Positions 3,846-55,797 of a DNA stretch of 64,000 bases are shown here, piece by piece. The first letter of the stretch is position 1; every line of letters begins with the position of its first letter. Position numbers and translations under genes: made by a program. The notes under the pieces were generated by a model. It was given only the letters and a program-made list of their open reading frames with translations, made no database searches and was not told the origin of the DNA. This DNA comes from Macrostomum lignano. Taxonomy: Eukaryota. Location: the NCBI GenBank assembly GCA_002269645.1, contig NIVC01001159.1:237414-301413 (forward strand), in the 5' to 3' direction.

Positions 3846-6800
3846 TCACGCGACCAGGTGACCAACTAGTTCGTCATCTTCAGCGCGCAGATGGGGCCGG
3901 TGCAGCGGGCTCAGCCAGCGCCAGGAGGCCGGCTGGCCGAACACCCTGGCCAGTCGGTCAGAACAGCTCAAACCTTGAGCAGTTCTCTGCTCGCCTTTGA
4001 TTCGCTCGATTCCCTGGGGGGGATTTTTGTAGAAAGTAGGAAGAAAATTTCCTCCCCTCCCCATGCATCAATCAATAAGAAGCGCTGATGTACAAGTTCA
4101 AGAGAAACAGTTTCTATGCAAAGACTTAGTGGTGAAAACAAAATAGAATCATTTTATAGTTCTAGTTTACAAGACGCTCCTTGCTCTTCTTTAGCCTTGA
4201 TTATTGTGAACTATTGAATTATCGTTTTAAATTTGAGACTATTTTGATATATTCCTCATTGAGAAATCAAAGAGAAACCTTTCCCAGACAGAATTTTAAG
4301 TTTGTCCCGATAAACGACTCAGCTACCCGAAAGCTTCCTACGTAAATTAGAAGACAATGTCTTTCGAGTTTTGCACAAGCCACATCAATAAAGGAGTGCA
4401 ATTTCAAGGACTACTGTAGTACGAAGTATAACAGGAGACAAAACTCAAAGACGGTTTACTTTTTAGCCTCCGAGAAAACTACACCTTGTGCAAGTTACAA
4501 GGCCCTCTGTGCTTGCATCATCGCAAAATCAAAACTACTTGAAGTATAGACAAGAGGCACATAATTTGGACACTACAAAACATACGACACTTCACAATGT
4601 CCACTTACCGTTGTGTTGGTGAGAATAGCGCTGATCTGCGATCCCGCCATCACCGCGGTGAATATGCCAAATAAGAGGCTGAGCACAATCAGTATGAGCA
4701 GTAGCATTGTGCTCATAGCGGGAGATGGACCGCCGCTACAGGCTGAAGGGTTTAATACAACCTACTTTTTGAGCCACTGAATCAATTAGTCTTTTATGCT
4801 GTTATACAATTTCAGTTCAAATTGTACTCACCATCCCACTCAGATCTGAGACAGATTGCGAAATAGTGCAAGCACAGGTAGACCGTAAACCAACTCACTA
4901 GGGAAATGTAAGCCTGGAAATCGTGTTGTAGGGGGGTATTTCAAACAGTTAGTAACATTAATTAGTTCTATCCTGTTTAGGATGTGTTTGAAGGTATTCC
5001 CAAAGCAAACAAAATGTTCTAAATAAATAAGTAATAAAACATATTTAATAAATTATTCATTACATGTCGTTAATAACCAGCTGAGAAGTTTCGTAAGTCA
5101 AGATCGGTAGCAATCTGGGGTAAGTTAAGCAGTTAACGGGTTTGGGCGGATTTGCTTCCCCCCCCTACTATTAGTAGTTTTGGTTTCGGAAATGTGAGGA
5201 TGAGTGGATAGGTTAGTTAAGGGGTCATGTGGATTTCTAATAAGTAAAGTTGATTGCATGTTTTGACGCTAAAAGCAAGAATCAGCCGTAAAGACGGTCT
5301 CTGACTGTTTTTACCCTGACTGCCTCTCTGGTAGCTTGTCTAAGGGTTGTGCGCAATCCGATTGGCCTAGCTTCGGCTAGCCCAATAATAAGGGTCCGCC
5401 CCAAAGGGGCTGTGCCCATCTAAAAATAACCCTATTTCTCTAACGTACATTCCAATTATTTGGCCCTCGGCCTTGGGTTAGGGGGGGGTGTACCTGGAGT
5501 GAGTGTGTACTCTGGACTGCAGTGTGGCTAGAACGGGACTTGAGCCCCCCGGTCGTACCCGCCCTGCAGGAAAGAATGACCATTCACCAAGGTGTACGGT
5601 AGAGCCTAGTTGATGCCAGCCCTGAGGCTGAGCCCCGGGTTGCAGGTTGCCTCTCACCTGCTAGTAGGGTTCAGGTGCTCCTTCTGCCATTCTTTTTTCT
5701 GGGCTGGCATCCCAGCGCGGTTTTATCCCTTGCTTTTATGCTTTTATTCTTTTATCAGGCCATTAGTTTGCCTTCCAATCTTTGGAGTTATGAGCTCTGC
5801 CCTACCTGCCCGATCCATCCTGCTCTGTACTTGGTCCATCTGCTGGCTCCTCTGGTTGTCTCCCTGCCTAAGTGTCTGGCTCTCATCCTGACAGTGGATT
5901 GGAGTCCTGGGGAATGAGTTTGTCCCGAATCGGGGATACCGACTGAGTCCGGGTCCTCTTGCTCCTTTTGCCCCTTCCCGACCCCTTGGCCTGGCCTCCA
6001 ATATAGAGCTGGATAGGCGATACCCTTGGGGTTTGTAGCCGGTAGACGGTCTTCCTGCCTGGAGTCTCGCCCTCGGAAACAAGCCTTCCAGACTCGCTCC
6101 AATAGTTCAGCCATTTCCGTAGACTTCGGGGTTTCCCCGCTCTCGGACCGCTCTCAGTAGTAACCCAAGCTTTTTTCGCAATTTCCAATTTTTCTGCGCA
6201 CTCCCGAAGACTTGTCTGCTGGGTGGGTGGCCTGGGTGGACTCGGTCTCAGCACCGTCCCTGATTCCACTTTTTGGGTTGGCGGTGTCTTGTACCGTAGG
6301 TTTGGGCTAGTAGCACCAATACTCATGTTCTCACCAGAGTCCTGAGCTCTGGTCCCAATCGTGGCCTCTCGGGCTACATGCCCCTGGCAGTATGGCCCAC
6401 AGAATAGATCCAGCGGCAGAGCCCCTCTAGGGCTGATCCGCGGTAGGCCCCTGGCTTTCCTCCCCCGTTTAACAACAAAGGCAAGAATCAGGAGTTATGA
6501 GCTCTGCCCTCCCTGTCTGGTCCATCTTGGTTGCCTCGGTCCATCTGCTGGCTCCTCTGGTATAGTCTCCCTGCTTATTGTGTCTCGGCTCTCATCACTG
6601 ACAGGGGATTGGTGTCCTGGGGAATGAGTTCGTCCCGAATCGGCTGAGTCCGGTGTCCCTTTGCTCATTGTGCTCCTCACCAACCCCTTGGCCTGGGCTT
6701 ATTAGAGCTGGACAGCGAAAAAGCCTTGAGGCTTGCAGTCCTATAGGAGGATTTATGCGGTTGCCTACCTGATGGGAGACTCGCCCACCGCAATAAGCTT

Positions 6801-9336
6801 CCAGACTCGCTCCAATAGTTTAGCCTTTTCCGTAGACTCGGGTCTTTCCGCTCTCGGACTGCTTAGTAATTCCAAAACCTCTTAGAGCTGGGTAGTGAAA
6901 AAGCCTTGTGGCTTGCAGCTATATATGGGGAACTTTATAGACTTTCTGCCTCCTGATTGGAGACTCGCCCTTGGTAAACTAGCTGCTCAGACTGGCTCAA
7001 ATCTAAAGCCTTTTTCCGTAGACTTCGGGTTTTCCGCTCTGGGACCGTTTTTAAAAAATTTTCCCAAATTTTTCTCGCGCGCACACAACTCGGGTTTTGT
7101 CGTTGGGGGGGGGGGTGGCTTGGGTGGATTCGGCCCTTGCACCGTCCCTGATTCCCCTATGGGTTGGCGGTGTCTTAGTCCATAGGCTTGGGTTAGTAGC
7201 AACCAATAAGGCTTCACCAGGCCTTGAGTCCTGGTCCCAATCTGGGCCTCTCGGGCTTCGGCCCTGGTAGCATGGCCCCCTACAAGATCCAGAGGCAGAG
7301 CCCTACTTCGGCTGATCCGCTGGTAGCCCCGGCTTCCCACCCCCTTTAGCAACAGCAACAGCAACAATTGAACCGATGGACTTAAAAGCCGCTGACCAGC
7401 TAATTAAACTTACGGTAAACAGGACAAAGAATTTCTGATTGCGCAGGCCGACACAGTTGTTAATCCACGGGCAGTGATGATCCATGCGACGAATGCAGCG
7501 GCCGCAGACGCTGCAGTGATGCGTGCGGTCCGGCTTGACGCAGTCGCAGCGGGCGCAGCGGTACACGACGCGGTCACGACCGTCTGGCAGGGGGCCCAAG
7601 CGCAGCAAGTTCTCGTGGTTGGCGCTACCAAGCGGCACCGCACCCTGCGTGAACAGTTAGTTTTATATGCGAGTTTAGAGCGCGAGAGTGGGCTCGGAGG
7701 TAAATGATCACATTTAAATGATGGAGGGTTAAATGACTGGAGTTGAGGGAGTAGAGATTGAAAAGAATAGAGTTGGTGTAGGTATTTGGCAGATGGGAAT
7801 TGAGGCGATCGGGAATAAATATTGATGGGATGGAGATGGAGAACATGGAATTGAAGGATGAGGATGGGAATCGAAAGGATGGGGTTTGGGAGAGGGGTTT
7901 GAGAGGATGAAGATCGAGATGATGGGGTTAGAGGGCACGGGGTTTGGTGTGATTGGGTTTGAGGGGATGGGGATCGAGAGGATGGGGTTTGAGGGCACGG
8001 GGTTTGGTGTGATTGGGTTTGAGGGGATGGGGATCGAGAGGATGGGGTTTGAGGGGATGGGGATCGAGAGGATGGGGTTTGAGGGGATGGGGATCGAGAG
8101 GATGGGGTTTGAGGGGATGGGGATCGAGAGGATGGGGTTTGAGGGGATGGGGATCGAGAGGATGGGGTTTGAGGGGATGGGGATCGAGAGGATGGGGTTT
8201 GAGGGGATGGGGATCGAGAGGATGGGGCTTGAGGAGATGGGGTTTGAGGGGATAGGGTTTGAGGGGATGGGGTTTGAGGAGTTGGGGTTTGATGAGATAG
8301 GGTTTGAGCGTATGGGGATCGAGGGGATGGAGTTTGAGGGAATGGGGATCGAGGGGATGGGGTTTGAGGGGATGGGGATCGAGGTGATGGGGATTAAGAG
8401 GACGGGGATCGAGAGGATGGGATAGAGGGCACGGGGTTTGAGGTGATGGGGTTTGAGGGGATGGGGATAAGGGGCATGGGGTTTGATGAGATGGGGTTTG
8501 AGGAGATGGGGTTTGAGGAGATTGGGATCGAGGGGATGGGGATGGGGATCAGTGTGATGAGGATTAAGGGGATGGGGTTTGAGAAGATGAGGTTGAGGGT
8601 ATGGGGTTGAGGGGATGGCGATTTAGATGGGAATTGAGGAATTGAGATGAGATGGATTGAGAAGATGGATATTGAGTGACGGGGTGATTGAAAGAGAGTA
8701 AATCCAGAATGAATATTTGGAATGGGGATTGTGTCGGTAGGGATTAAATAGGTGGGGGATGCAGAAGAGATTTTGTGGATGGCGATCGAGCGGGTGGGAA
8801 TTAAAGTCTAAAAGCAAAAGCAAAGGCTGAAGGCAAACCGGATCGCTGAAGACAGCCCGCAGATGTGCAGTCAACGCCAGACCCATCAGTATGTGGAAGC
8901 AGATGCCGCCAAGAAGTCGGAATGTGGCAGAAGGCGCTGGGGCCAGAATGACGCAGAGGGTGATGAGTTCAGCGTAGAGCATGACAAGCCAAGCCAGGCA
9001 AAGGCAGACAAGGCCGAGACCGTCGCGTACAATCTTAATAAATCAGAATGAGAAATAACTTGTACAAAACTTCTCAGCTGCTACTAAGAGTAAAGTCTTG
9101 CTTTCACAGCTCACCCATCTGCCAGCAGCGTCTACCCGGGTCTGCCTGCCTGGCCGAGCAGTCCAGCCAGCGGCAGTGCGCACTACAATTCGTGGCCCAA
9201 CTGGCTGCTGCAAATCACTGCTAGTGGTGGTGGAGCAGTCATTTTCGTGAACCAGCTGGACTGCTGGAGACTGCTGGCCCTGCTGAATAGCTGAGGCATC
9301 TGGGTCCAAGTCGAGGAGGGTAGACTTGTCCTCCAT
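3846..9336 (-). CDS. ZDHHC3: DHHC palmitoyltransferase, ZDHHC3/7-like (~343 aa, 6 coding exons)
   Basis: Exons 9336-9115, 9033-8839, 7644-7414, 4913-4832, 4742-4609, 4013-3846 splice in frame. Contains [55 protein letters not shown] and VFG..W..P motifs typical of ZDHHC3/7. Confidence 0.93.
5286..6476 (+). mobile_element. Candidate non-coding retroposon (SINE-like) with an SL-RNA-like 5' end, full-length copy
   Basis: Flanked by a 15-bp direct repeat with 14/15 identity (AAAAGCAAGAATCAG 5271-5285; AAAGGCAAGAATCAG 6477-6491). Starts CCGTAAAGACGGTCTCT, ends in an AACAAC tail, and has many hairpins including cUUCGg loops. Confidence 0.6.
6492..7348 (+). mobile_element. Older, 5'-truncated, diverged copy of the same retroposon with an internal ~175-bp duplication
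   Basis: Colinear with 5785-6476 (shared blocks GAGTTATGAGCTCTGCCCT, GGGGAATGAGTT, GACTCGCTCCAATAGTT, CCGTCCCTGATTCC, GGTTGGCGGTGTCTT). 6702-6870 is repeated at 6882-7050. Ends in an (AGCAAC)n tail. Confidence 0.6.
7860..8700 (+). repeat. G-rich 30-bp minisatellite (GAGGGGATGGGGATCGAGAGGATGGGGTTT), degenerating at both ends, in ZDHHC intron 2
   Basis: Direct tandem repeats are visible; the periodic ORFs in the track ([10 protein letters not shown]) are artefacts of it. Confidence 0.9.
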
Positions 9337-14470: not shown

Positions 14471-15710
14471 AACCATTACCAATATTATATATAACTTTTA
14501 ATTAAATTGGCAAATTAGCTATACTATAGAAAACCAAAATAAAAGAAAAGCAAGAGAAATGAGAATAGAAAAGTTGAAATAAAAATGTTTAAAAGGCCTA
14601 TTTGTTGTTGTTAAACGAATGGGAGTAAGGTATTGTCCCTCGGGTCAGCCCTGGGTGGGCTCTGCCGATGTATTGTTTAATATAAATTATAAATTGACGA
14701 ATATTTAATACACGAAATAAATAAGGCCTATTTAATACAATAGATTTACAATTTCTTTTGTAGCCTTTGCCCTGATTTAAGTCCTTGGTTTGTATTATAT
14801 TAGATATCATTTAAAGCATATATTTATTTTATTGAAGCTTTTAAAAATTTTATTATTTTATCAATTATTACTTTTATTATCATTATAAAAATAGCTAACT
14901 TTACTAGGTCTAAAACCAAAACAATTTTAGAATAATGTTTTAAACTAAATGTTGCAAAATAATAATAATCCTAGGCCTAACTTAAGATATATTAAATATT
15001 TTTAGAGTTTAGCAAGGTTATAGTACCCATTCTAGTAAGCAGTAATCAAAGGCTTTCATTTTTAATGTAATTTGGCTGAAAAGTTAGGTAGATTCTATTT
15101 TTGTGTATATCATATGATTCTAAGATCAATGTTAAGATCTTATTTTATCTTTAGTTAAAAACCTATTAAACATTTGGTTGGTTGGTAACTATATTGATAA
15201 AATATTAAAAAGGCAAATTTTCTTGTTTTTTATTAATAGTATTTATTTTTAGTATATTGGATTATCATAACTTTATAATTACCAAGTTTGCAACTAAGGC
15301 TCATAAATCAGTTAGGCCTATCCTAGTATATTGCACATTTATTCTAAGTCTAGATTAATGCCATTTTGTATTGAAATTCTATAATTTAGCCCTCATCACT
15401 TTCCTACTAAAAAGAGATTTCATCTTTCATAATGATTATAACCTATTAGCTAAAATTAAAATATATTAAATGCTGGCTCATATTGAGCTACAAGTTTGAT
15501 TATGAATTCACCTGAAATCCTTTGGTGAAGATAGAAAAATCAACTTTTTTTAGACCAAGCTACATCAAACTCTTCATTTTGCAGCAATCCTAGTAATGTT
15601 TTGGTTTATGGGATTATAATTGATATCTTTGAGATTGGGTACAATTGAAATTGAAAGCATTAATTTGTATTTATTCTTCATGAAGCAAGCTGGCAATCAA
15701 AGCATCATTT

Positions 15711-25054: not shown

Positions 25055-25289
25055 CATCTGAAAACTGCGTACGGCTGTTCAGTCCAAGGACTGGGGGGGA
25101 GGGGGGTCGCCACACATCCTCATTTACCCCAGCTAATGCTGGCACCCATTTTACAGCTGGGTGAACTGAAGCAATGCAGAGTTAAGTGTCTTGCTCAAGG
25201 ATACATACTAATTGTTTTGAGTGGCTTGAGAATCGAACCCCCGACCTTTCAGTTGTGAGTCCGACGCTCTGACCAGAAGGCTACAACCC
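25055..25289 (-). mobile_element. tRNA-derived SINE, copy 1
   Basis: On the minus strand a tRNA-like head (TAGCCTTCTGGTCAGAGC ... GGTTCGATTC) precedes a core TCCTTGAGCAAGACACTTAACTCTGCATTGC..CACCCAGCTGTAAAATGGGTGCC. Near-identical to 55545-55797. Confidence 0.8.
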
Positions 25290-25547: not shown

Positions 25548-36041
<10,494 letters not shown>

Positions 36042-37949: not shown

Positions 37950-39016
37950 TCACATTCCCTCAAAGTACTTTCCACCACTATCTATGCACCATCGAAATGC
38001 GTATGCACCATGTCTGAAAGCAGTCATGGTACTCCGAAGTTGGTATACCCTGTAGAGCTGAATTTACCGCTTGGGCAAGGTCTTGTATGTGTGAAAACGG
38101 CCTCCCAGAAATGATGGATTCGAACCTCGGGAACAGCCAAAAGTCGCATGATGCTAGGTCTGGAGAGTAGGGTGGATGGGGGGGGCAGCAGCCGGACCCC
38201 CTGCTGCTCCAGGTACGCCATGGTTGAGGCCACTCTGTGCGGTGCCGCATTGTGGTGCAGCAGGAGTCGAGGTCCATGCCTGGTTCGCGCACGTTCCTGC
38301 CGCTCCTGCAGCACGCCTGGCAGAACAGTGTCTGTGTAGTACCTGGCAGTCACTGTGGCACCCGCTGGAAGGATGTTTACCGATACAACACCCTGAGAGT
38401 TGAAAAAAATGGTGAATATCCGCTTCCGACTGCGGAATCCGGTCTTCAGCACCTTGGGCCTCGGGCTCATCTTCTGCAGGCCAGACCATGTTGGACTGCT
38501 TATCCTTCATGGTAAAAGAAGGAGATCCAACATTTGTCTCCTGTGATGACATCCGACAGTCGTCGTGGGCCGTGGGGCTCAAACATTTGCACCCACAAGA
38601 GACAGATGCGCACCCTCTCTGCTTTCTGCTCCGGAGTGAAGAAGATGGGGTACCCACCGAGCGCAGGTCTTTGTGCGGCCCAGTCGCTCATGCATGATGT
38701 TATGAGCACTTCCACAGCTGACACCAAGCTCATAGGCAAGGAATCTTAGCGTAATGCTCCGATCCTCACGAATTATTGCATCGGCATGGGCCACGACATC
38801 TTCGGTCACGGATGTCCAGGGTCGGCCAGACCTCGGTTCATAGTTGAAGCTGTCCCAGCCTTCCAAGAAATGGCGCAGCCAGCGGGAAACCGTGTCAAAT
38901 GATGAAGCAGAGTCAGCTAAAACATTCACCGGATCGGTTTGAATCTCAGTCACTTTGCAACCAAGTTGCATGCACATAAAGATATAGAAGCGAACACTGT
39001 CTTTTGATGTTTCCAT
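37950..39016 (-). pseudogene. Frameshifted mariner-type transposase
   Basis: Fragments in successive frames: HTH region (TVSRW..F..G..S..YEPRSGRP), RWVPHL, ITGDKCW, LLLHHNAAPH (HDNA degenerate), HPPYSPDLASCDFWLFP, C-terminal CIDSGGKYFEGM*. At least three frameshifts. Confidence 0.93.
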
Positions 39017-39747
39017 CAGCTACTGAAAACACATGGAAAATATATGGCTGTGAAATTTGAGTGGAGCACATTAGGAAGCCAAAAATGCATATAAATATAG
39101 CAAACAGATATAGCCGCATAGGTGTAAGTTTTTGGCTTTTTTCCAATATACTAAAAATGAAAATCTTGCTTGTTTGTTTGTTTGTACGCAATCGATTAGA
39201 GAAAAAATGGCTGTACCGATTTTCTTGAGACTTGCACTGTTCGATCAGAAATTTTCCCGTGACGGTACATGCATCGTGGCTAAGAAATTGCTCGATGCTA
39301 AAGGCATTAAATATTCGAAAAACATGCTTTTTTGCAAAGTTCAAGCAAACTTTTCGACTTGAAATGCATTGTAAGAATGCTAGAGAAAAAACTGACTGGT
39401 TGATTCTGATTCTGAAATAGATTGCATCATAACTGAATTGTAACTCCGACTTGAATTGAAAATGCAGTGTGGAAGCGTAGCACCAGACTTGATTTAAATT
39501 GCGTAACCATATTGTTAACTGATACTGACTGACTGAGAAACTGATTATGTCATAACTGCTTCGTGTGATTTACTCTATGCTTGGAGTTTTGAAACTTATA
39601 ATTATATTATAGAAGTGCTAAAATTCATGTTATCAAAACGATGAGAGCTAGCCTAGAGGTAAACAGACTGACTGCTAAATGCAGAGACGATGGTTCGGAT
39701 TTTTAGAGAGTTTTTTTAATTAAAGTTTTTTAACGCCAAAAAAACTA

Positions 39748-42700
39748 AAAAATCATGGAAGCGTCATGTAAAAAATCATAAAAGCGTTATGTAAAAAATC
39801 ATAGAAGCGTCATGTAAAAAATCATAAAAGCGTTATGTAAAAATCATAGAAGCGTCATGTAAACAATCATAGAAGCGTCATGTAAAAATCATAGAAGCGT
39901 CATGTAAAAAATCATAGAAGCGTCATGTAAACAATCATAGAAGCGTCATGTAAACAATCATAGAAGCGTCATGTAAAAAATCATAAAAGCGTTATGTAAA
40001 AAATCATAGAAGCGTCATGTAAAAAATCTTAGAAGCGTCATGTAATCAATCATAGAAGTGTCATGTAAACAATCATAGAAGCGTCATGTAATCAATCATA
40101 AAAGCGTTATGTAAAAAATCATAGAAGCGTCATGTAAAAAATCTTAGAAGCGTCATGTAAAAATTATAGAAGCGTCATATAAACAATCATAGAAGCGTCA
40201 TGTAAACAATCATAGAAGCGTCATGTAAAAATTATAGAAGCGTCATATAAACAATCATAGAAGCGTCATGTAAACAATCATAGAAGCGTCATGTAAAAAT
40301 CATAGAAGCGTCCTGCAGAAATCGTAGAAGCGTCATGAAATAATCATAGAAGCGTCATGTAAAAAGCATAGAAGCGTCATGTAAAAAATCATAGAAGCGT
40401 CATATAAACAATCATAGAAGCGTCATGTAAAAAATCTTAGAAGCGTCATGTAAAAATTATAGAAGCGTCATATAAACAATCATAGAAGCGTCATGTAAAC
40501 AATCATAGAAGCGTCATGTAAACAATCATAGAAGCGTCATGTAAACAATCATAGAAGCGTCATGTAAAAATCATAGAAGCGTCCTGCAGAAATCGTAGAA
40601 GCGTCATGAAATAATCATAGAAGCGTCATGTAAAAAGCATAGAAGCGTCATGTAAAAAATCATAGAAGCGTCATATAAACAATCATAGAAGCGTCATGTA
40701 AACAATCATAGAAGCGTCATGTAAAAATCATAGAAGCGTCCTGCAGAAATCGTAGAAGCGTCATGAAATAATCATAGAAGCGTCATGTAAAAAGCATAGA
40801 AGCGTCATGTAAAAAATCATAGAAGCGTCATGTAAACAATCATAGAAGCGTCATGTAAAAAATCATAAAAGCGTTATGTAAAAAATCATAGAAGCGTCAT
40901 GTAAAAAATCTTAGAAGCGTCATGTAAAAATCATAGAAGCGTCATGTAAACAATCATAGAAGCGTCATGTAAAAATCATAAAGCGTCATGTAAAAATCAT
41001 AGAAGCGTCATGTAAAAAATCTAGAAGCGTCATGTAAAAATCATAGAAGCGTCATATAAACAATCATAGAAGCGTCATGTAAAAAATCTAGAAGCGTCAT
41101 GTAAAAATCATAGAAGCGTCATATAAACAATCATAGAAGCGTCATGTAAACAATCATAGAAGCGTCATGTAAAAATCATAGAAGCGTCATGCAGAAATCG
41201 TAGAAGCGTCATGAAAAATCATAGAAGCGTCATGTAAAAATCATAGAAGCGTCATGTAAAAATCATAGAAGCGTCATATAAACAATCATAGAAGCGTCAT
41301 GTAAAAATCATAGAAGCGTCATGTAAAAATCATAGAAGCGTCATATAAACAATCATAGAAGCGTCATGTAAACAATCATAGAAGCGTCATGTAAACAATC
41401 ATAGAAGCGTCATGTAAACAATCATAGAAGCGTCATGTAAAAATCATAGAAGCGTCATGCAGAAATCATAGAAGCGTCATGAAAAAATCATAGAAGCGTC
41501 ATGTAAAAATCATAGAAGCGTCATGTAAAAAATCATAGAAGCGTCATGTAAACAATCATAGAAGCGTCATGTAAACAATCATAGAAGCGTCATGTAAACA
41601 ATCATAGAAGCGTCATGTAAAAATATAAAGCGTCATGTAAAAATCATAGAAGCGTCATGTAAACAATCATAGAAGCGTCATGTAAAAAATCATAAAAGCG
41701 TCATGTAAAAAATCATAGAAGCGTCATGTAAACAATCATAGAAGCGTCATGTAAACAATCATAGAAGCATCATGTAAACCATCATGGAAACGTCGTGTAA
41801 ACAATCATAGAAGCGTCATGTAAAAATCAAAGAAGCGTCATGTAAAAAATCATAGAAGCATCACGTAAAAATCATAGAAGCGTCATGTAAACAATCATAG
41901 AAGCGTCATGTAAAAAATCATAGAAGCGTCATGTAAACATCATAGAAGCGTCATGTAAACAATCATAGAAGCGTCATGTAAAAAATCATAGAAGCGTCAT
42001 GTAAACAATCATAGAAGCGTCATGTAAAAATATAAGCGCATGTAAAAATCCATAGAAGCGTCATGTAAACAATCATAGAAGCGTCATGTAAAAAATCATA
42101 GAAGCGTCATGAAAAAATCATAGAAGCGTCATGTAAACAATCATAGAAGCGTCATGTAAAAATCATAGAAGCGTCCTGCAGAAATCGTAGAAGCGTCATG
42201 AAATAATCATAGAAGCGTCATGTAAAAAGCATAGAAGCGTCATGTAAAAAATCATAGAAGCGTCATATAAACAATCATAGAAGCGTCATGTAAAAAAGCT
42301 TAGAAGCGTCATGTAAAAATTATAGAAGCGTCATATAAACAATCATAGAAGCGTCATGTAAACAATCATAGAAGCGTCATGTAAAAATCATAGAAGCGTC
42401 CTGCAGAAATCGTAGAAGCGTCATGAAATAATCATAGAAGCGTCATGAAAAGCATAGAAGCGTCATGTAAAAAATCATAGAAGCGTCATATAAACAATCA
42501 TAGAAGCGTCATGTAAAAAATCTTAGAAGCGTCATGTAAACATCATAGAAGCGTCATGTAAACAATCATAGAAGCGTCATGTAAAAAATCATAGAAGCGT
42601 CATATAAACAATCATAGAAGCGTCATGTAAACAATCATAGAAGCGTCATGTAAACAATCATAGAAGCGTCATGTAAAAATATAAGCGTCATGTAAAAACC

Positions 42701-45700
42701 ATAGAAGCGTCATGTAAACAATCATAGAAGCGTCATGTAAACAATCATAGAAGCGTCATAAAAAAATCATAGAAGCGTCATGTAAACAATCATAGAAGCG
42801 TCATGTAAACAATCATAGAAGCGTCATGTAAAAATCATAGAAGCGTCCTGCAGAAATCGTAGAAGCGTCATATAAACAATCATAGAAGCGTCATGTAAAC
42901 AATCATAGAAGCGTCATGTAAACAATCATAGAAGCGTCATGTAAACAATCATAGAAGCGTCATGTAAAAAATCATAGAAGCGTCATGTAAACATCATAGA
43001 AGCGTCATGTAAACAATCATAGAAGCGTCATGTAAAAAATCATAGAAGCGTCATATAAACAATCATAGAAGCGTCCTGTAAACAATCATAGAAGCGTCAT
43101 GTAAACAATCATAGAAGCGTCATGTAAAAATATAAGTGTCATGTAAAAACCATAGAAGCGTCATGTAAACAATCATAGAAGCGTCATGTAAACAATCATA
43201 GAAGCGTCATAAAAAAATCATAGAAGCGTCATGTAAACAATCATAGAAGCGTCATGTAAACAATCATAGAAGCATCATGAAGCGTCATGTAAACAATCAT
43301 AGAAGCGTCATGTAAAAATCATAGAAGCGTCATGTAAAAAATCATAGAAGCGTCATGTAAACAATCATAGAAGCGTCATGTAAAAATCATAAGCGTCATG
43401 TAAAAACATAGAAGCGTCATGTAAAAATCATAAAGCGTCATGTAAAAAATCATAGAAGCGTCATGTAAAAAATCATAGAAGCGTCATGTAAACAATCATA
43501 GAAGCGTCATGTAAAAATATAAGCGTCATGTAAAAATCATAGAAGCGTCATGTAAAAATCATAGAAGCGTCATGTAAAAATCATAGAAGCGTCATGTAAA
43601 CAATCATAGAAGCGTCATGTAAAAATCATAGAGCGCATGTAAAAATCATAGTAGCGTCATTAAAAATCATAGAAGCGTCATGTAAAAATCATAGAAGCGT
43701 CATGTAAAAAGCATAGAAGCGTCATGTAAAAAATCATAGAAGCGTCATGTAAAAAATATAGAAGCGTCATGTAAAAACCATAGAAGCGTCATGTAAACAA
43801 TCATAGAAGCGTCATATAAACATCATAGAAGCGTCATGTAAACAATCATAGAAGCGTCATGTAAACAATCAAGAAGCGTCATGTAAAAATCATAGAAGCG
43901 TCATGTAAAAATCATAGAAGCGTCATGTAAACAATCATAGAAGCGTCATGTAAAATCATAGCGTCATGTAAAAAATCATAGAAGCGTCATGTAAACAATC
44001 ATAGAAGCGTCATGTAAAAATATAGAAGCGTCATGTAAAAACATAGAAGCGTCATGTAAACAATCAGAAGCGTCATGTAAAAAATCATAGAAGCGTCATG
44101 AAAAAATCATAGAAGCGTCATGTAAACAATCATAGAAGCGTCATGTAAAAATATAAGCGTCATGTAAAAATCATAGAAGCGTCATGTAAAAATCATAAAG
44201 CGTCATGTAAAAATCATAGAAGCGTCATGTAAAAAGCATAGAAGCGTCATGTAAAAAATCATAGAAGCGTCACGTAAAAATCATAGAAGCGTCATGTAAA
44301 AAATCAGAAGCGTCATATAAACATCATAGAAGCGTCATTTAAACAATCATAGAAGCGTCATGTAAAAAATCATAGAAGCGTCATATAAACATCATAGAAG
44401 CGTCATGTAAGCAATCAAAGAAGCGTCATGTAAACAATCATAGAAGCGTCATGTAAAAATATAAGCGTCATGTAAAAACCATAGAAGCGTCATGTAAACA
44501 ATCATAGAAGCGTCATGTAAAAAATCATAGAAGCGTCATGTCAAAAATCATAGAATCGTCATGTAAAAAATATAAGCGTCATGTAAAAACCATAGAAGCG
44601 TCATGTAAACAATCATAGAAGCGTCGTGTAAACAATCATAGAAGCGTCATGTAAAAATCATAGAAGCGTCATGTAAAAATCATAGAAGCGTCATGTAAAA
44701 AATCATAGAAGCGTCATGTAAAAATTATAGAATCGTCATATAAACATCATAGAAGCGTCATGTAAACAATCATAGAAGCGTCATGTCAACAATCATAGAA
44801 GCATCATATAAACATCATAGAAGCGTCATGTAAACAACCATAGAAGCGTCATGTAAAAATCAAAGAAGCGTCATGTAATAAATCATAGAAGCGTCATGTA
44901 AAAAATCATAGAAGCGTCATGTAAACAATCATAGAAGCGTCGTGTAAACAATCATAAAAAAGCGTTATGTAAAAAATAATAGAAGCGTCATGTAAACAAT
45001 CATAGAAGCGTCATGTAAAAATCGAAGAAGCGTCATATAAAAAGCATAGAAGCGTCATATAAACAATCATAGAAGCGTCATATAAAAAATCATAGAAGCG
45101 TCATGTAAACAATCATAGAAGCGTCATGTAAAAATCATAGAAGCGTCATGTAAAAAATCATAGAAGCGTCATGTAAAAAATCATAGAAGCGTCATGTAAA
45201 CAATCATAGAAGCGTCATGTAAAAAATCATAGAAGCGTTATGTAAAAAATCATAGAAGCGTCATGTAAAAAATCTTAGAAGCGTCATGTAAACAATCATA
45301 GAAGTGTCATGTAAACAATCATAGAAGCGTCATGTAAAAAATCATAAAAGCGTTATGTAAAAAATCATAGAAGCGTCATGTAAAAAATCGTAGAAGCGTC
45401 ATGTAAAAATTATAGAAGCGTCATATAAACAATCATAGAAGCGTCATGTAAACAATCATAGAAGCGTCATGTAAAAATCATAGAAGCGTCCTGCAGAAAT
45501 CGTAGAAGCGTCATGAAATAATCATAGAAGCGTCATGTAAAAAGCATAGAAGCGTCATGTAAACAATCATAGAAGCGTCATATAAACAATCATAGAAGCG
45601 TCATGTAAAAAAATCTTAGAAGCGTCATGTAAAAATTATAGAAGCGTCATATAAACAATCATAGAAGCGTCATGTAAACAATCATAGAAGCGTCATGTAA

Positions 45701-48700
45701 ACAATCATAGAAGCGTCATGTAAACAATCATAGAAGCGTCATGTAAAAATCATAAAAGCGTCCTGCAGAAATCGTAGAAGCGTCATGAAATAATCATAGA
45801 AGCGTCATGTAAAAAGCATAGAAGCGTCATGTAAAAAATCATAGAAGCGTCATGTAAACAATCATAGAAGCGTCATGTAAAAAATCATAAAAGCGTTATG
45901 TAAAAAATCATAGAAGCGTCATGTAAAAAATCTTAGAAGCGTCATGTAAACAATCATAGAAGCGTCATGTAAACAATCATAGAAGCGTCATGTAAAAAAT
46001 CATAAAAGCGTTATGTAAAAAATCATAGAAGCGTCATGTAAAAAATCTTAGAAGCGTCATGTAAAAATTATAGAAGCGTCATATAAACAGTCATAGAAGC
46101 GTCATGTAAAAAATCTTAGAAGCGTCATGTAAAAATTATAGAAGCGTCATATAAACAATCATAGAAGCGTCATGTAAACAATCATAGAAGCGTCATGTAA
46201 AAATCATAGAAGCGTCCTGCAGAAATCGTAGAAGCGTCATGAAATAATCATAGAAGCGTCACGTAAAAATCATAGAAGCGTCATGTAAAAAATCAGAAGC
46301 GTCATATAAACAATCATAGAAGCGTCATGTAAAAAATCTTAGAAGCGTCATGTAAAAATTATAGAAGCGTCATATAAACAATCATAGAAGCGTCATGTAA
46401 ACAATCATAGAAGCGTCATGTAAACAATCATAGAAGCGTCATGTAAACAATCATAGAAGCGTCATGTAAAAATCATAGAAGCGTCCTGCAGAAATCGTAG
46501 AAGCGTCATGAAATAATCATAGAAGCGTCATGTAAAAAGCATAGAAGCGTCATGTAAAAAATCATAGAAGCGTCATATAAACAATCATAGAAGCGTCATG
46601 TAAACAATCATAGAAGCGTCATGTAAACAATCATAGAAGCGTCATGTAAAAATATAAGCGTCATGTAAAAACCATAGAAGCGTCATGTAAACAATCATAG
46701 AAGCGTCATGTAAAAAATCATAGAAGCGTCATGAAAAAATCATAGAAGCGTCATGTAAACAATCATAGAAGCGTCATGTAAAAATCAAAGAAGCGTCATG
46801 TAAAAAATCATAGAAGCATCACGTAAAAATCATAGAAGCGTCATGTAAACAATCATAGAAGCGTCATGTAAAAAATCATATAGAAGCGTCATGTAAACAT
46901 CATAGAAGCGTCATGTAAACAATCATAGAAGCGTCATGTAAAAAATCATAGAAGCGTCATGTAAACAATCATAGAAGCGTCATGTAAAAATATAAGCGCC
47001 ATGTAAAAACCATAGAAGCGTCATGTAAACAATCATAGAAGCGTCATGTAAAAAATCATAGAAGCGTCATGAAAAAATCATAGAAGCGTCATGTAAACAA
47101 TCATAGAAGCGTCATGTAAAAATATAAGCGCCATGTAAAAATCATAGAAGCGTCATGTAAAAATCATAGTAGCGTCATGTAAAAAATCATAGAAGCGTCA
47201 TGTAAACAATCATAGAAGCGTCATGTAAAAATATAAGCGCCATGTAAAAATCATAGTAGCGTCATGTAAAAAATCATAGAAGCGTCATGTAAAAATCATA
47301 GAAGCGTCATCTAAAAAGCATAGAAGCGTCATGTAAAAAATCATAGAAGCGTCATGTAAAAAATATAAGCGTCATGTAAAAACCATAGAAGCGTCATGTA
47401 AACAATCATAGAAGCGTCGTGTAAACAATCATAGAAGCGTCATGTAAAAAATCATAGAAGCGTCATATAAACATCATAGAAGCGTCATGTAAACAATCAA
47501 AGAAGCGTCATGTAAACAATCATAGAAGCGTCATGTAAAAATATAAGCGTCATGTAAAAATATAAGCGTCATGTAAAACCATAGAAGCGTCATGTAAACA
47601 ATCATAGAAGCGTCATGTAAACAATCATAGAAGCGTCATGTAAAAATATAAGCGTCATGTAAAAACCATAGAAGCGTCATGTAAACAATCATAGAAGCGT
47701 CATGTAAAAAATCATAGAAGCGTCATGAAAAAATTATAGAAGCGTCATGTAAACAATCATAGAAGCGTCATGTAAAAATATAAGCGCCATGTAAAAATCA
47801 TAGTAGCGTCATGTAAAAAATCATAAAAGCGTCATGTAAAAATCATAGAAGCGTCATCTAAAAAGCATAGAAGCGTCATGTAAAAAATCATAGAAGCGTC
47901 ACGTAAAAATCATAGAAGCGTCATGTAAAAAATCAGAAGCGTCATATAAACATCATAGAAGCGTCATGTAAACAATCATAGAAGCGTCATGTAAAAAATC
48001 ATAGAAGCGTCATATAAACATCATAGAAGCATCATGTAAACAATCAAAGAAGCGTCATGTAAACAATCATAGAAGCGTCATGTAAAAATATAAGCGTCAT
48101 GTAAAAACCATAGAAGCGTCATGTAAACAATCATAGAAGCGTCATGTAAAAAATCATAGAAGCGTCATGAAAAAATCATAGAAGCGTCATGTAAACAATC
48201 ATAGAATCGTCATGTAAAAAATATAAGCGTCATGTAAAAACCATAGAAGCGTCATGTAAACAATCATAGAAGCGTCGTGTAAACAATCATAGAAGCGTCA
48301 TGTAAAAATCATAGAAGCGTCATGTAAAAATCAAAGAAGCGTCATGTAAAAAATCATAGAAGCGTCATGTAAACAATCATAGAAGCGTCATGTAAACAAT
48401 CATAGAAGCATCATATAAACATCATAGAAGCGTCATGTAAACAACCATAGAAGCGTCATGTAAAAATCAAAGAAGCGTCATGTAAAAAATCATAGAAGCG
48501 TCATGTAAACAATCATAGAAGCGTCGTGTAAACAATCATAAAAAAGCGTTATGTAAAAAATCATAGAAGCGTCATGTAAACAATCATAGAAGCGTCATGT
48601 AAAAATCGAAGAAGCGTCATATAAAAAGCATAGAAACGTCATATAAACAATCATAGAAGCGTCATATAAAAAATCATAGAAGCGTCATGTAAAAATCATA

Positions 48701-49190
48701 GTAGCGTCATGTAAAAAATCATAGAAGCGTCATGTAAACAATCATAGAAGCGTCATATAAACAATCATAGAAGCGTCATCTAAAAAGCATAGAAGCGTCA
48801 TGTAAACAATCATAGAAGCGTCATGGAAAAAGCATAGAAGCGTCATGTAAACAATCATAGAAGCGTCATATAAACAATCATAGAAGCGTCATCTAAAAAG
48901 CATAGAAGCGTCATGTAAACAATCATAGAAGCGTCATGGAAAAAGCATAGAAGCGTCATGTAGACAATCATAGAAGCGTCATGTAAAAAATCATAGAAGC
49001 GTCATGTAAAAATCATAGAAGCGTCATGTAAACAATCATGGAAGCGTCATGTAAAAAATCATAGAAGCGTCATGTAAAAAGCATAGAAGCGTCATATAAA
49101 CAATCATAGAAGCGTCATATTAAAAATCATAGAAGCATCATGTAAAAATCATAGAAGCGTCATGAAAAATCATAGAAGCCTCATTTAAAG
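39748..49190 (+). repeat. ~9.4-kb satellite of a 22-24-bp monomer (ATCATAGAAGCGTCATGTAAA(C)A(A)), roughly 400 copies, with higher-order blocks
   Basis: Continuous tandem array; diagnostic variants such as GTCCTGCAGAAATCGTAG recur in fixed order. Confidence 0.97.
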
Positions 49191-50119
49191 ACTAATGAAA
49201 GTGTCAGTTAAAAAAATTAAGAAGCATCATGGTAGAATAAAAGAAGCGTCATGTCAGACATGAAGGTGTCATGTAAAAATTAAATGCAGTTATAATGCTG
49301 TGCTGGGGAGAAAAACTGAGACGTAAAGGCTCTCAGAGAATAACTGAGATTACGGGGGGGGTGGTTCTGAGATGTCAAAGCAAAAGTCAGAAGCTACTTC
49401 AAAGTTCATGTACTTTACTCAATTTTTTAATTACATTCTTTGTTGGCTCGCCACGGGGGGAGGCGCTGATAGAAGAAGAGTCATGTAAAAAATAAAAGTA
49501 GCACTAAGTATACATAAAAGAAAGGTCATGTCGAAGTCAAAAGATTCATTTGGGAATTGCTACGATGTCAAAGCTTGGTGGAAATCGTTATAGTGCTGTG
49601 ATTCTTAAAGAAGGAATCACTAAAATGCCAAGGCTTAGGGGAGAAGAATTGCTGAGATTTCAAGGCTTTAGGTTGGGTTAAAGTTAGGTTTAGGTCAGGT
49701 GTGGGTTGAGGGTTATATTTTATCGGGTTTCAAGGTTAACAGGGGATTTTTTAGATTTCAAGGTTTATGGGGGCCATCGCTGACATGTCAAGGCTTACGG
49801 GGGGGAATAGCTGAGATGTCAAGGCTTACGGGGGGGAATAGCTGAGATGTCAGGGCTCACTGGGGTATAAATGAGATTTCAAGGCTAAAACCAGAAGCTA
49901 CATGTAGTTTATTGAAAACTTTTTATTACATTATTTGATGCCTCCTCAGGGGAGGGATCGCTGATAAAAAAAGCGTAATGTAAAAATAAAAGAAGCTTCA
50001 TGTCGAAGTTAAGAGATTCATTTGGGAATCCCTACGATATCGAGGCTTGCAGGGAATCGCAATAATGCTGTAGTAGTGCTATTATGACTCTTAGAGAGAA
50101 TTACTGAAATTTCAATGCT

Positions 50120-50490: not shown

Positions 50491-51390
<900 letters not shown>

Positions 51391-55544: not shown

Positions 55545-55797
55545 GAGCTCAGCCGCAGCTATTGCGCAGCGCACCTGAAGGCTGCGTACGGCTGTTCAGT
55601 CCAAGGACTCGGGGGTCGCCACACACACCCTCAATTACCCCAGCTAATGCTGGCACCCATTTTACAGCTGGGTGAACTGGAGCAATGCAGAGTTAAGTGT
55701 CTTGCTCAAGGACACAAATTGTTCCGAGTGGGTGGAGAATCGAATCGCCGACCTTTCAGTCGTGATTCGGACGCTCTAACCATTAGGCTATGCTGAG
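55545..55797 (-). mobile_element. tRNA-derived SINE, copy 2
   Basis: Head CATAGCCTAATGGTTAGAGCG...TTCGATTC; same core and 3' body as 25055-25289. Confidence 0.8.

Follow-up and report, generated by a model that had tools for sequence, protein, structure and literature searches.

A non-coding retroposon insertion of Macrostomum lignano with a spliced-leader-like 5' end

In a stretch of 64,000 nucleotides (nt) from the flatworm Macrostomum lignano (assembly GCA_002269645.1, contig NIVC01001159.1, positions 237,414 to 301,413 of the forward strand; the whole stretch is called the window, and all positions refer to its full length) a non-coding unit of about 1.19 kb was found at 5285-6476 on the plus strand. 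This unit, copy A, starts like the spliced leader (SL) of the genus, lies between 15-bp direct repeats and ends in an AAC-type tail. The observation of an SL-derived retro-insertion is real and well beyond chance. Copy A is explained, with about even confidence, as a single insertion by target-primed reverse transcription, mediated by a long interspersed element (LINE), of a composite non-coding RNA which carries a short SL fusion. The SL start looks like a fusion acquired during retroposition, and the window gave no evidence of a leader-derived family of short interspersed elements (SINEs).

The leader of M. lignano has been published as CCGTAAAGACGGTCTCTTACTGCGAAGACTCAATTTATTGCATG (PMC5173321), and with an extra 5' G it is identical in M. 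cliftonense and M. hystrix (PMC10468722 supplement), the leader sequence thus being the same in three Macrostomum species. Copy A starts with (G)CCGTAAAGACGGTCTCTGACTG. Positions 5285-5307 agree with leader nucleotides 1-23 in 22 of 23 positions when the G is counted, and they do so at the exact 5' edge of the unit. Nucleotides 1-18 are perfect and the single mismatch is T19G. By our arithmetic such a match at a fixed position has a chance of about 1e-12, and the SL 17-mer occurs once in the window. The SL-like start which a first-pass annotation of this DNA had proposed was thereby borne out by the published leader, and copy A indeed owes its 5' end to that of the SL RNA. Nucleotides 19-30 of the unit (GACTGTTTTTAC) are the reverse complement of SL nucleotides 4-15 apart from two C>T changes. 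The mismatch T19G is located inside a predicted 5' hairpin (Table 1) and also inside a 7-nt direct repeat, CTGACTG, which occurs at 5301-5307 and 5316-5322, 15 nt apart.

The direct repeats on the two sides of the unit are exactly as had been described, with 14 of 15 positions identical. When the whole window was searched with the 15-mer as a pattern, fewer than three mismatches were obtained only at 5271-5285 and 6477-6491, and the chance of at least 14 identities in 15 at fixed offsets is about 4e-8 by our arithmetic. The repeat directly abuts SL nucleotide +1 on the left, where its last G (5285) may instead be SL nucleotide 1, and the tail on the right. Where the repeat starts on the left, the bottom strand has the sequence TTTT/AG, and the terminal AAA of the element overlaps the right repeat; both are what priming by an A-rich tail would leave. 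The unit ends in TTTAACAAC(AAA) with the AAC-type tail, and the tail noted earlier at 6476 was found again at the same end of two further copies in the window. No homologue was detected for any open reading frame (ORF) on either strand of the unit, including one of 147 amino acids on the minus strand. A protein-coding body was rejected on these grounds, in agreement with the previous statement that no credible protein ORF is present.

Directly after the right repeat lies a head-less copy of the 3' 690 nt, copy B, which the first-pass annotation had missed. Its first base coincides with the end of the right repeat. Within it about 184 nt are duplicated (6702-6885 resembling 6882-7065), and its tail is (CAACAG)n CAACAA. 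No duplication was found to flank copy B, nor was one found around A and B taken together as a dimer. Copy C is a short stub of this 3' end, ...CGTTTAACAACAACAAA, with unrelated sequence beyond it. The three copies have in common an AGCCC/GGGCT hairpin with variable loops, in copy A about 45 nt from the end of the body, and the sequence TTTA(A/G)CAAC, after which their flanks are unrelated. As A, B and C diverge after this common end, the 3' end of the family is fixed just before the right 15-mer, and since B and C continue differently after the tail the 15-mer itself is not part of it. A common 3' end combined with 5' truncation is a signature of LINE-dependent retroposition, and the earlier suggestion of target-primed reverse transcription is supported by the 15-bp duplication, the tail common to the copies and the 5'-truncated relatives. 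A partial tandem of the Penelope type was rejected for this arrangement because full and partial copies stand in the opposite of the usual order, their sequences differ by 23% and the searches gave no hammerhead.

For comparison with copy A, authentic SL RNA genes were taken from two contaminant contigs. One, L001 (metagenome contig Ga0302322_100095745, gene at 615-723), was found by scanning metagenome contigs with a 22-mer. The other, L026 (JAGQZA010000190.1, gene at 1589-1698), came from a scan of prokaryotic genomes; it is binned as a metagenome-assembled genome of Flavobacteriaceae and is a flatworm contaminant. The 17-mer was present in 43 stretches of bacterial and archaeal genomes, where about 70 would be expected by chance according to our arithmetic, and among the 43 only L026 also has the 22-nt SL pattern. 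A scan of viral contigs for the leader gave nothing useful. Both authentic genes contain the identical 45-nt leader, that of L001 being the one of M. lignano, then ATG/GTAAGACACCG, a GATCCA..TGGATC stem, (G)TATTTTTAGC and an AGCCC..GGGCT stem, amounting to about 109 nt overall. This anatomy agrees with the description of the SL RNA in PMC8629364, according to which the deduplicated M. lignano assembly contains eight copies of the SL RNA gene. The L001 gene, the one of the two which was folded, folds well (z=-3.6).

Local alignment of an authentic gene with the element is confined to nucleotides 1-23. After nucleotide 23 local alignment is no better than with shuffled sequences (35/300 shuffles reach the score), and global alignment yields p values of 0.43-0.50 against shuffles. 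A covariance model built from the L001 and L026 genes gave 11.6 bits for 5285-5388 (E=0.4, rank 3 in the window). Copy A lacks leader nucleotides 24-45 and the GTAAG donor, nor does it show the layout of the authentic RNA, whose roughly 109 nt form stem-loops I-III, with an Sm-type site separating II from III. Of the former alignment to the leader, nucleotides 1-23 have therefore stood and the similarity stops abruptly at nucleotide 23, while the idea that the whole unit copies or mimics an SL RNA is contradicted by the alignments and by the covariance score. The donor-like TG/GTAG at 5330/5331 (+46) and the Sm-site-like AATTATTTGG at 5454-5463 (about +170), to which the same annotation had pointed, are indeed present in copy A, whereas the real donor ATG/GTAAG is at +45 and the real Sm region, GTATTTTTAGC, at about +77. 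As there is no alignment past nucleotide 23 and the covariance score is weak, neither motif is a homologue of its counterpart.

These motifs would be central if the locus were a variant SL RNA gene, active now or until recently, which donated a 46-nt leader, GCCGTAAAGACGGTCTCTGACTGTTTTTACC...CTCTG, with CUG/GUAG as the splice site and the Sm site at 5454-5463. Such a gene is extremely improbable. The GGT at +46 is close to that at +45 in the real gene and gives a candidate leader end ...CCTCTCTG, AAUUAUUUGG fits the UVUUUGG motif of SL RNAs from parasitic flatworms (PMC12582326), and 5285-5480 folds better than shuffled sequences (z=-3.35). But the leader would end without AUG, the donor reads GUAGCU instead of GUAAG, the Sm-like site lies about 170 nt in, where the authentic RNA has its own at about 77 nt, the preceding DNA is unlike the upstream region of the authentic gene, and the covariance-model score is not significant. 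Only one SL is seen in the transcriptomes of three Macrostomum species (PMC5173321, PMC10468722), and the locus bears the marks of a retro-insertion in or beside an intron of a zDHHC gene.

Retrocopying of a transposon transcript which had acquired its leader by ordinary SL trans-splicing is very improbable as well. In its favour, 597 loci with leader fragments on LINE or long terminal repeat (LTR) elements have been reported from parasitic flatworms (PMC12582326), and in M. lignano trans-splicing affects about 30% of the genes (PMC8629364). However, trans-splicing adds all 45 nt down to ...TTGCATG, whereas in copy A nucleotides 24-45 are missing and the 5' half is kept, with a break that is not at the splice junction. 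In its short length and in the position of its break the SL piece fits neither a trans-spliced leader nor a whole SL RNA.

Resemblance to the 3' end of the SL RNA was found at three places on the sense strand of the head, namely directly past nucleotide 23, at 5352-5388 (a hairpin with CCAATAA) and at 5750-5780, the last with an empirical p of 0.003-0.013. Other parts of the window match the SL RNA 3' part equally well or better, among them 5397-5452 on the antisense strand of the head, and the resemblance is therefore considered weak. For the 3' end of the head and for 5352-5388 homology with the SL RNA 3' end is suggestive without being robust, as the three placements score alike and the antisense one higher, and all three resemblances are treated as unproven. 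The antisense segment (5397-5452, minus strand) has TATTTTTAG, identical to the 9 nt at the core of the authentic Sm region, and then, past a 7-nt insertion relative to the authentic RNA, a CAGCCCC..TGGGG hairpin. This match, top-scoring in comparison with the sense-strand ones, is probably due to chance. Searches with Rfam in the window and in the region returned nothing relevant; in a control, Rfam (Rfam 15) proved to have no model that detects even authentic SL RNAs, so that the lack of an Rfam match in copy A is uninformative.

Beyond the junction at which the SL part gives way to TTTTTACC, the remaining head, 5308-5783, matches no SL RNA, Rfam family, protein or other sequence of the window, and a second occurrence of the head was not found in the 64 kb. 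It folds far better than shuffled sequences (z=-3.0), while the body does not (z=-0.15). Five T5-T6 runs are located on the sense strand of the unit, at 5308, 5693, 6171, 6189 and 6270. No tRNA-like sequence was found in the head, and a tRNA-like head was rejected on that search. With its length of 1.19 kb and the five T-runs copy A is not a SINE of the RNA polymerase III (pol III) type; it falls outside the strict definition of a SINE, which asks for a head of tRNA, 7SL or 5S origin, an internal pol III promoter and a terminator-free transcript.

In the favoured explanation the 3' 690 nt would be a non-autonomous module which supplies the 3' hairpin and the AAC-type tail to the reverse transcriptase of a resident LINE, and 5308-5783 would belong to the full-length retroposon RNA. 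The 5' end would be the cap-proximal 18-23 nt of an SL RNA only, as a product of fusion and not of trans-splicing. Two routes to such a fusion are compatible with the sequence. In route (a) the reverse transcriptase, having arrived at the 5' end of the retroposon RNA, would switch template onto an SL-bearing RNA, either the SL RNA itself or a trans-spliced mRNA, at the microhomology CT(T/G)ACTG and would then proceed to the cap. The junction would fall in the CTGACTG repeat which holds T19G, and a switch at this point would also account for the lone mismatch. In route (b) a retroposon would have landed in a multicopy SL RNA gene at about nucleotides 18-23 and would have been transcribed from the +1 of that gene. 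Chimeras of small nuclear RNAs (snRNAs) with LINE or SINE 3' parts made by template switch, and 5' additions of U1 and U2 to SINEU, are well documented (PMC4494074), and elements which target SL or snRNA genes gain host 5' ends (PMC4640811).

Several points weigh against this explanation. The contrast in folding hints that the head, instead of merely continuing the retroposon upstream, is a structured RNA of its own. A template switch normally takes the enzyme to the 3' end of the acceptor RNA, whereas here it would have arrived 20 nt from the 5' end. Neither a partner LINE nor a reverse transcriptase ORF was found in the 64-kb window, and there was no further match to the 3' end of the element. 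With one head-bearing copy in the window the routes (a) and (b) cannot be separated, nor can a one-off event be separated from a master copy. The right repeat also ends exactly at the first base of copy B. Under this reading the abutment would be a mere coincidence unless a hot spot was used repeatedly, for example if two insertions of the same family had gone to one nick-prone site.

The abutment would disappear as a problem if the body family itself began with the 15-mer (AAARGCAAGAATCAG-GGAGTTATG...), which would then be no target-site duplication. The two body copies would then form a head-to-tail tandem of A' and B, and 5285-5783 would be a 499-bp SL-like retrocopy inserted 15 nt into A'. 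Copy B indeed has the 15-mer directly followed by GGAGTTATG, and copy A has both with the head precisely between them. The 14/15 identity is compatible with the 77-87% identity of the family (a probability of about 0.1 by our arithmetic), the head is similar over its last 31 nt to the Sm region, 3' hairpin and TTCCAAT end of the SL RNA, with the p value given above for 5750-5780, and the head is structured where the body is not. Yet the head would have been inserted with neither a flanking duplication nor a tail, the dimer of A' and B is likewise without a flanking duplication, and the TTTT/AG nick site together with the A-overlap at the tail fits a real duplication. The resemblance to the SL 3' end is, in addition, the weak one described above, with its equal or better matches in the window and on the antisense strand of the head. 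This arrangement is regarded as improbable.

An SL-headed, SINE-like family, in which a master element keeps a useful SL 5' end, copy A is full-length and B and C are 5'-truncated, appears rather unlikely. A near-perfect match over nucleotides 1-23 followed by no SL similarity would fit constraint, and equally a recent fusion. The 14/15 repeat indicates that the insertion itself is young, and the boundary at 5784 is set only by the start of copy B, which may simply be truncated. In Ascaris the 22-nt SL itself is reportedly a promoter element of the SL RNA gene, in work attributed to Hannon et al. 1990. That snRNA heads transcribed by RNA polymerase II (pol II) can found families is demonstrated by SINEU (PMC4494074). 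Against such a family, copies B and C in the 64-kb window are head-less, neither the head nor the SL 17-mer recurs there, and the length, the T-runs and the missing tRNA-like head speak against a pol III SINE. That the head is the 5' module of an amplifying set of pol II-transcribed, SL-RNA-derived retroposons, in which nucleotides 1-23 were kept as a promoter or as a signal for the cap or for assembly of the small nuclear ribonucleoprotein (snRNP), is quite unlikely. In a related version 5285-5783 may report an SL-related structured RNA gene of 0.5 kb in macrostomids.

Among known systems, copy A is best rated with the snRNA-capped chimeric retroposons. Retrocopies of snRNAs and LINEs arising by template switch include U6-L1 and U1/U2-Alu (Buzdin 2002 and Garcia-Perez 2007, as far as cited in PMC4494074), and tripartite chimeras occur in fungi (PMC2104539). 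Like these, copy A has a small nuclear RNA from its +1 fused upstream of a retroposon 3' part, with one duplication and the tail of the retroposon; of the features of the U6-L1 type it shows the +1 start, the tail and the single duplication, and 5285-5783 is a candidate for one complete small RNA, the likeness of 5750-5780 to the SL 3' end being equalled elsewhere in the window. In these chimeras the complete small RNA is present and its 3' end forms the join. In copy A only the first 18-23 nt are recognisable as SL, and this piece is followed by about 480 nt of structured sequence of no known match. To our knowledge an SL RNA has not been described as a partner in a retroposon chimera of the snRNA type.

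SINEU of crocodilians, with its U1 and U2 heads, resembles copy A in having a pol II-transcribed head of the Sm class, no known internal pol III promoter and internal T-runs, and for its head an origin by template switch has been proposed (PMC4494074). It differs in its many copies with common junctions and subfamilies, the criteria applied by Kojima, and in its length below 500 bp, as compared with a single copy of 1.19 kb. In length the SL segment of copy A does not come near the snRNA parts of SINEU. LINEs residing in SL or snRNA genes comprise SLACS, CZAR and CRE of trypanosomatids, NeSL-1 of nematodes and Utopia in U2 genes, and a platyhelminth NeSL-related lineage (R5/LIN) has varied targets (PMC4640811). 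They share with copy A a retroelement joined to a truncated SL or snRNA 5' part which can be transcribed from the start of the host gene. But they code for reverse transcriptase and endonuclease and are lodged within the target gene, the sequence of which continues on either side, whereas copy A is non-coding and flanked by a duplication that is not SL; it has no ORF homologues, and downstream of it lie the 15-mer and copy B and not SL nucleotide 24 onward.

A case from the same phylum is formed by the partial-leader loci of parasitic flatworms, where leader fragments are found on mobile elements. The authors of that study discarded them as not being SL RNA genes and explained them by retroposition of trans-spliced transposon RNA (PMC12582326), an explanation which misfits the 5' half-leader kept in copy A; duplications and junctions are not reported for those loci. 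Given such loci on LINE and LTR elements, the earlier statement that no SL-derived SINE head is known goes too far if it is read as 'never seen'.

If copy A is a one-off, it is a clean example of reverse transcriptases capturing the 5' end of the leader in a trans-splicing animal, and leader-seeded searches for SL RNA genes would also pick up such loci. If the junction of the SL with TTTTTACC were common to many copies, it would define the first retroposon family founded on SL RNA, give a handle on the part of the flatworm leader that carries promoter or snRNP-assembly information, and provide a natural marker set for Macrostomum genome evolution. Were the amplifying set of retroposons real, it would add a fifth source of SINE-like heads and would parasitise the trans-splicing machinery.

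Table 1. Features of copy A and its relatives in the window
Feature	Position	Strand	Basis
Left 15-bp direct repeat, putative target-site duplication, AAAAGCAAGAATCAG	5271..5285	+	repeat search
5' cap, SL-derived, GCCGTAAAGACGGTCTCTGACTG, leader nt 1-23 with T19G	5285..5307	+	leader and authentic-gene comparison
Predicted 12-bp 5' hairpin	5288..5314	+	folding
Rest of head, GC-rich, strongly structured, non-coding	5308..5783	+	folding, homology searches
Body of copy A, retroposon module common to B and C	5784..6476	+	BLAST, profile search
Right 15-bp direct repeat, AAAGGCAAGAATCAG	6477..6491	+	repeat search
Copy B, head-less body copy	6491..7367	+	BLAST, 73-77% identical to copy A body (690 nt)
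Copy C, 3' stub of about 77 nt, severely 5'-truncated	14601..14677	-	nhmmer E=0.0012

Close to these copies lies an exon of a zDHHC palmitoyltransferase (7303-7416, minus strand) with a GTAAGT donor, separated from the tail of copy B by only about 47 nt. Both A and B are antisense in an intron or flank of this gene. The window also contains a fucosyltransferase gene, the best database match of which is from M. lignano with 49% identity (UniRef entry), and a lectin gene for which no match was obtained at E<=1e-20. In the contig L026 a U1 snRNA gene (1121-1283, Rfam 151.7 bits) has the SL RNA gene about 300 bp downstream on the same strand, which suggests a linkage of U1 and SL genes in the source species. 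In L001 the SL RNA gene adjoins an intronless ORF (about 1785-2922). A short repeat is common to 55580-55720 (minus strand) and 25070-25210 (minus strand) of the window and to L001:120-200, with 85-87% identity over 40 nt; its core, ..TTGAGCAAGACACTTAAC..CAGTTCACCCAGCTGTAAAATGGGT.., presumably resembles the core of MIR/CORE-SINEs.

A satellite array of 9.5 kb at 39746-49254 consists of about 420 copies of a 23-nt unit, TAAAAAATCATAGAAGCGTCATG, and many other micro- and minisatellites are present, for instance (TAGT)n at 50491-51390 and a G-rich array with a 15-nt unit at 7877-8618. At 38000-39050 on the minus strand a degenerate remnant of a mariner/Mos1-like transposase is spread over several frames (HTH_32, HTH_48 and a partial Transposase_1). 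Two long ORFs of 1760 and 460 amino acids at 27265-33989 on the minus strand, coiled-coil-rich and Ser-rich by eye and without a Pfam domain, look like exons of one large host gene and not like a transposon.

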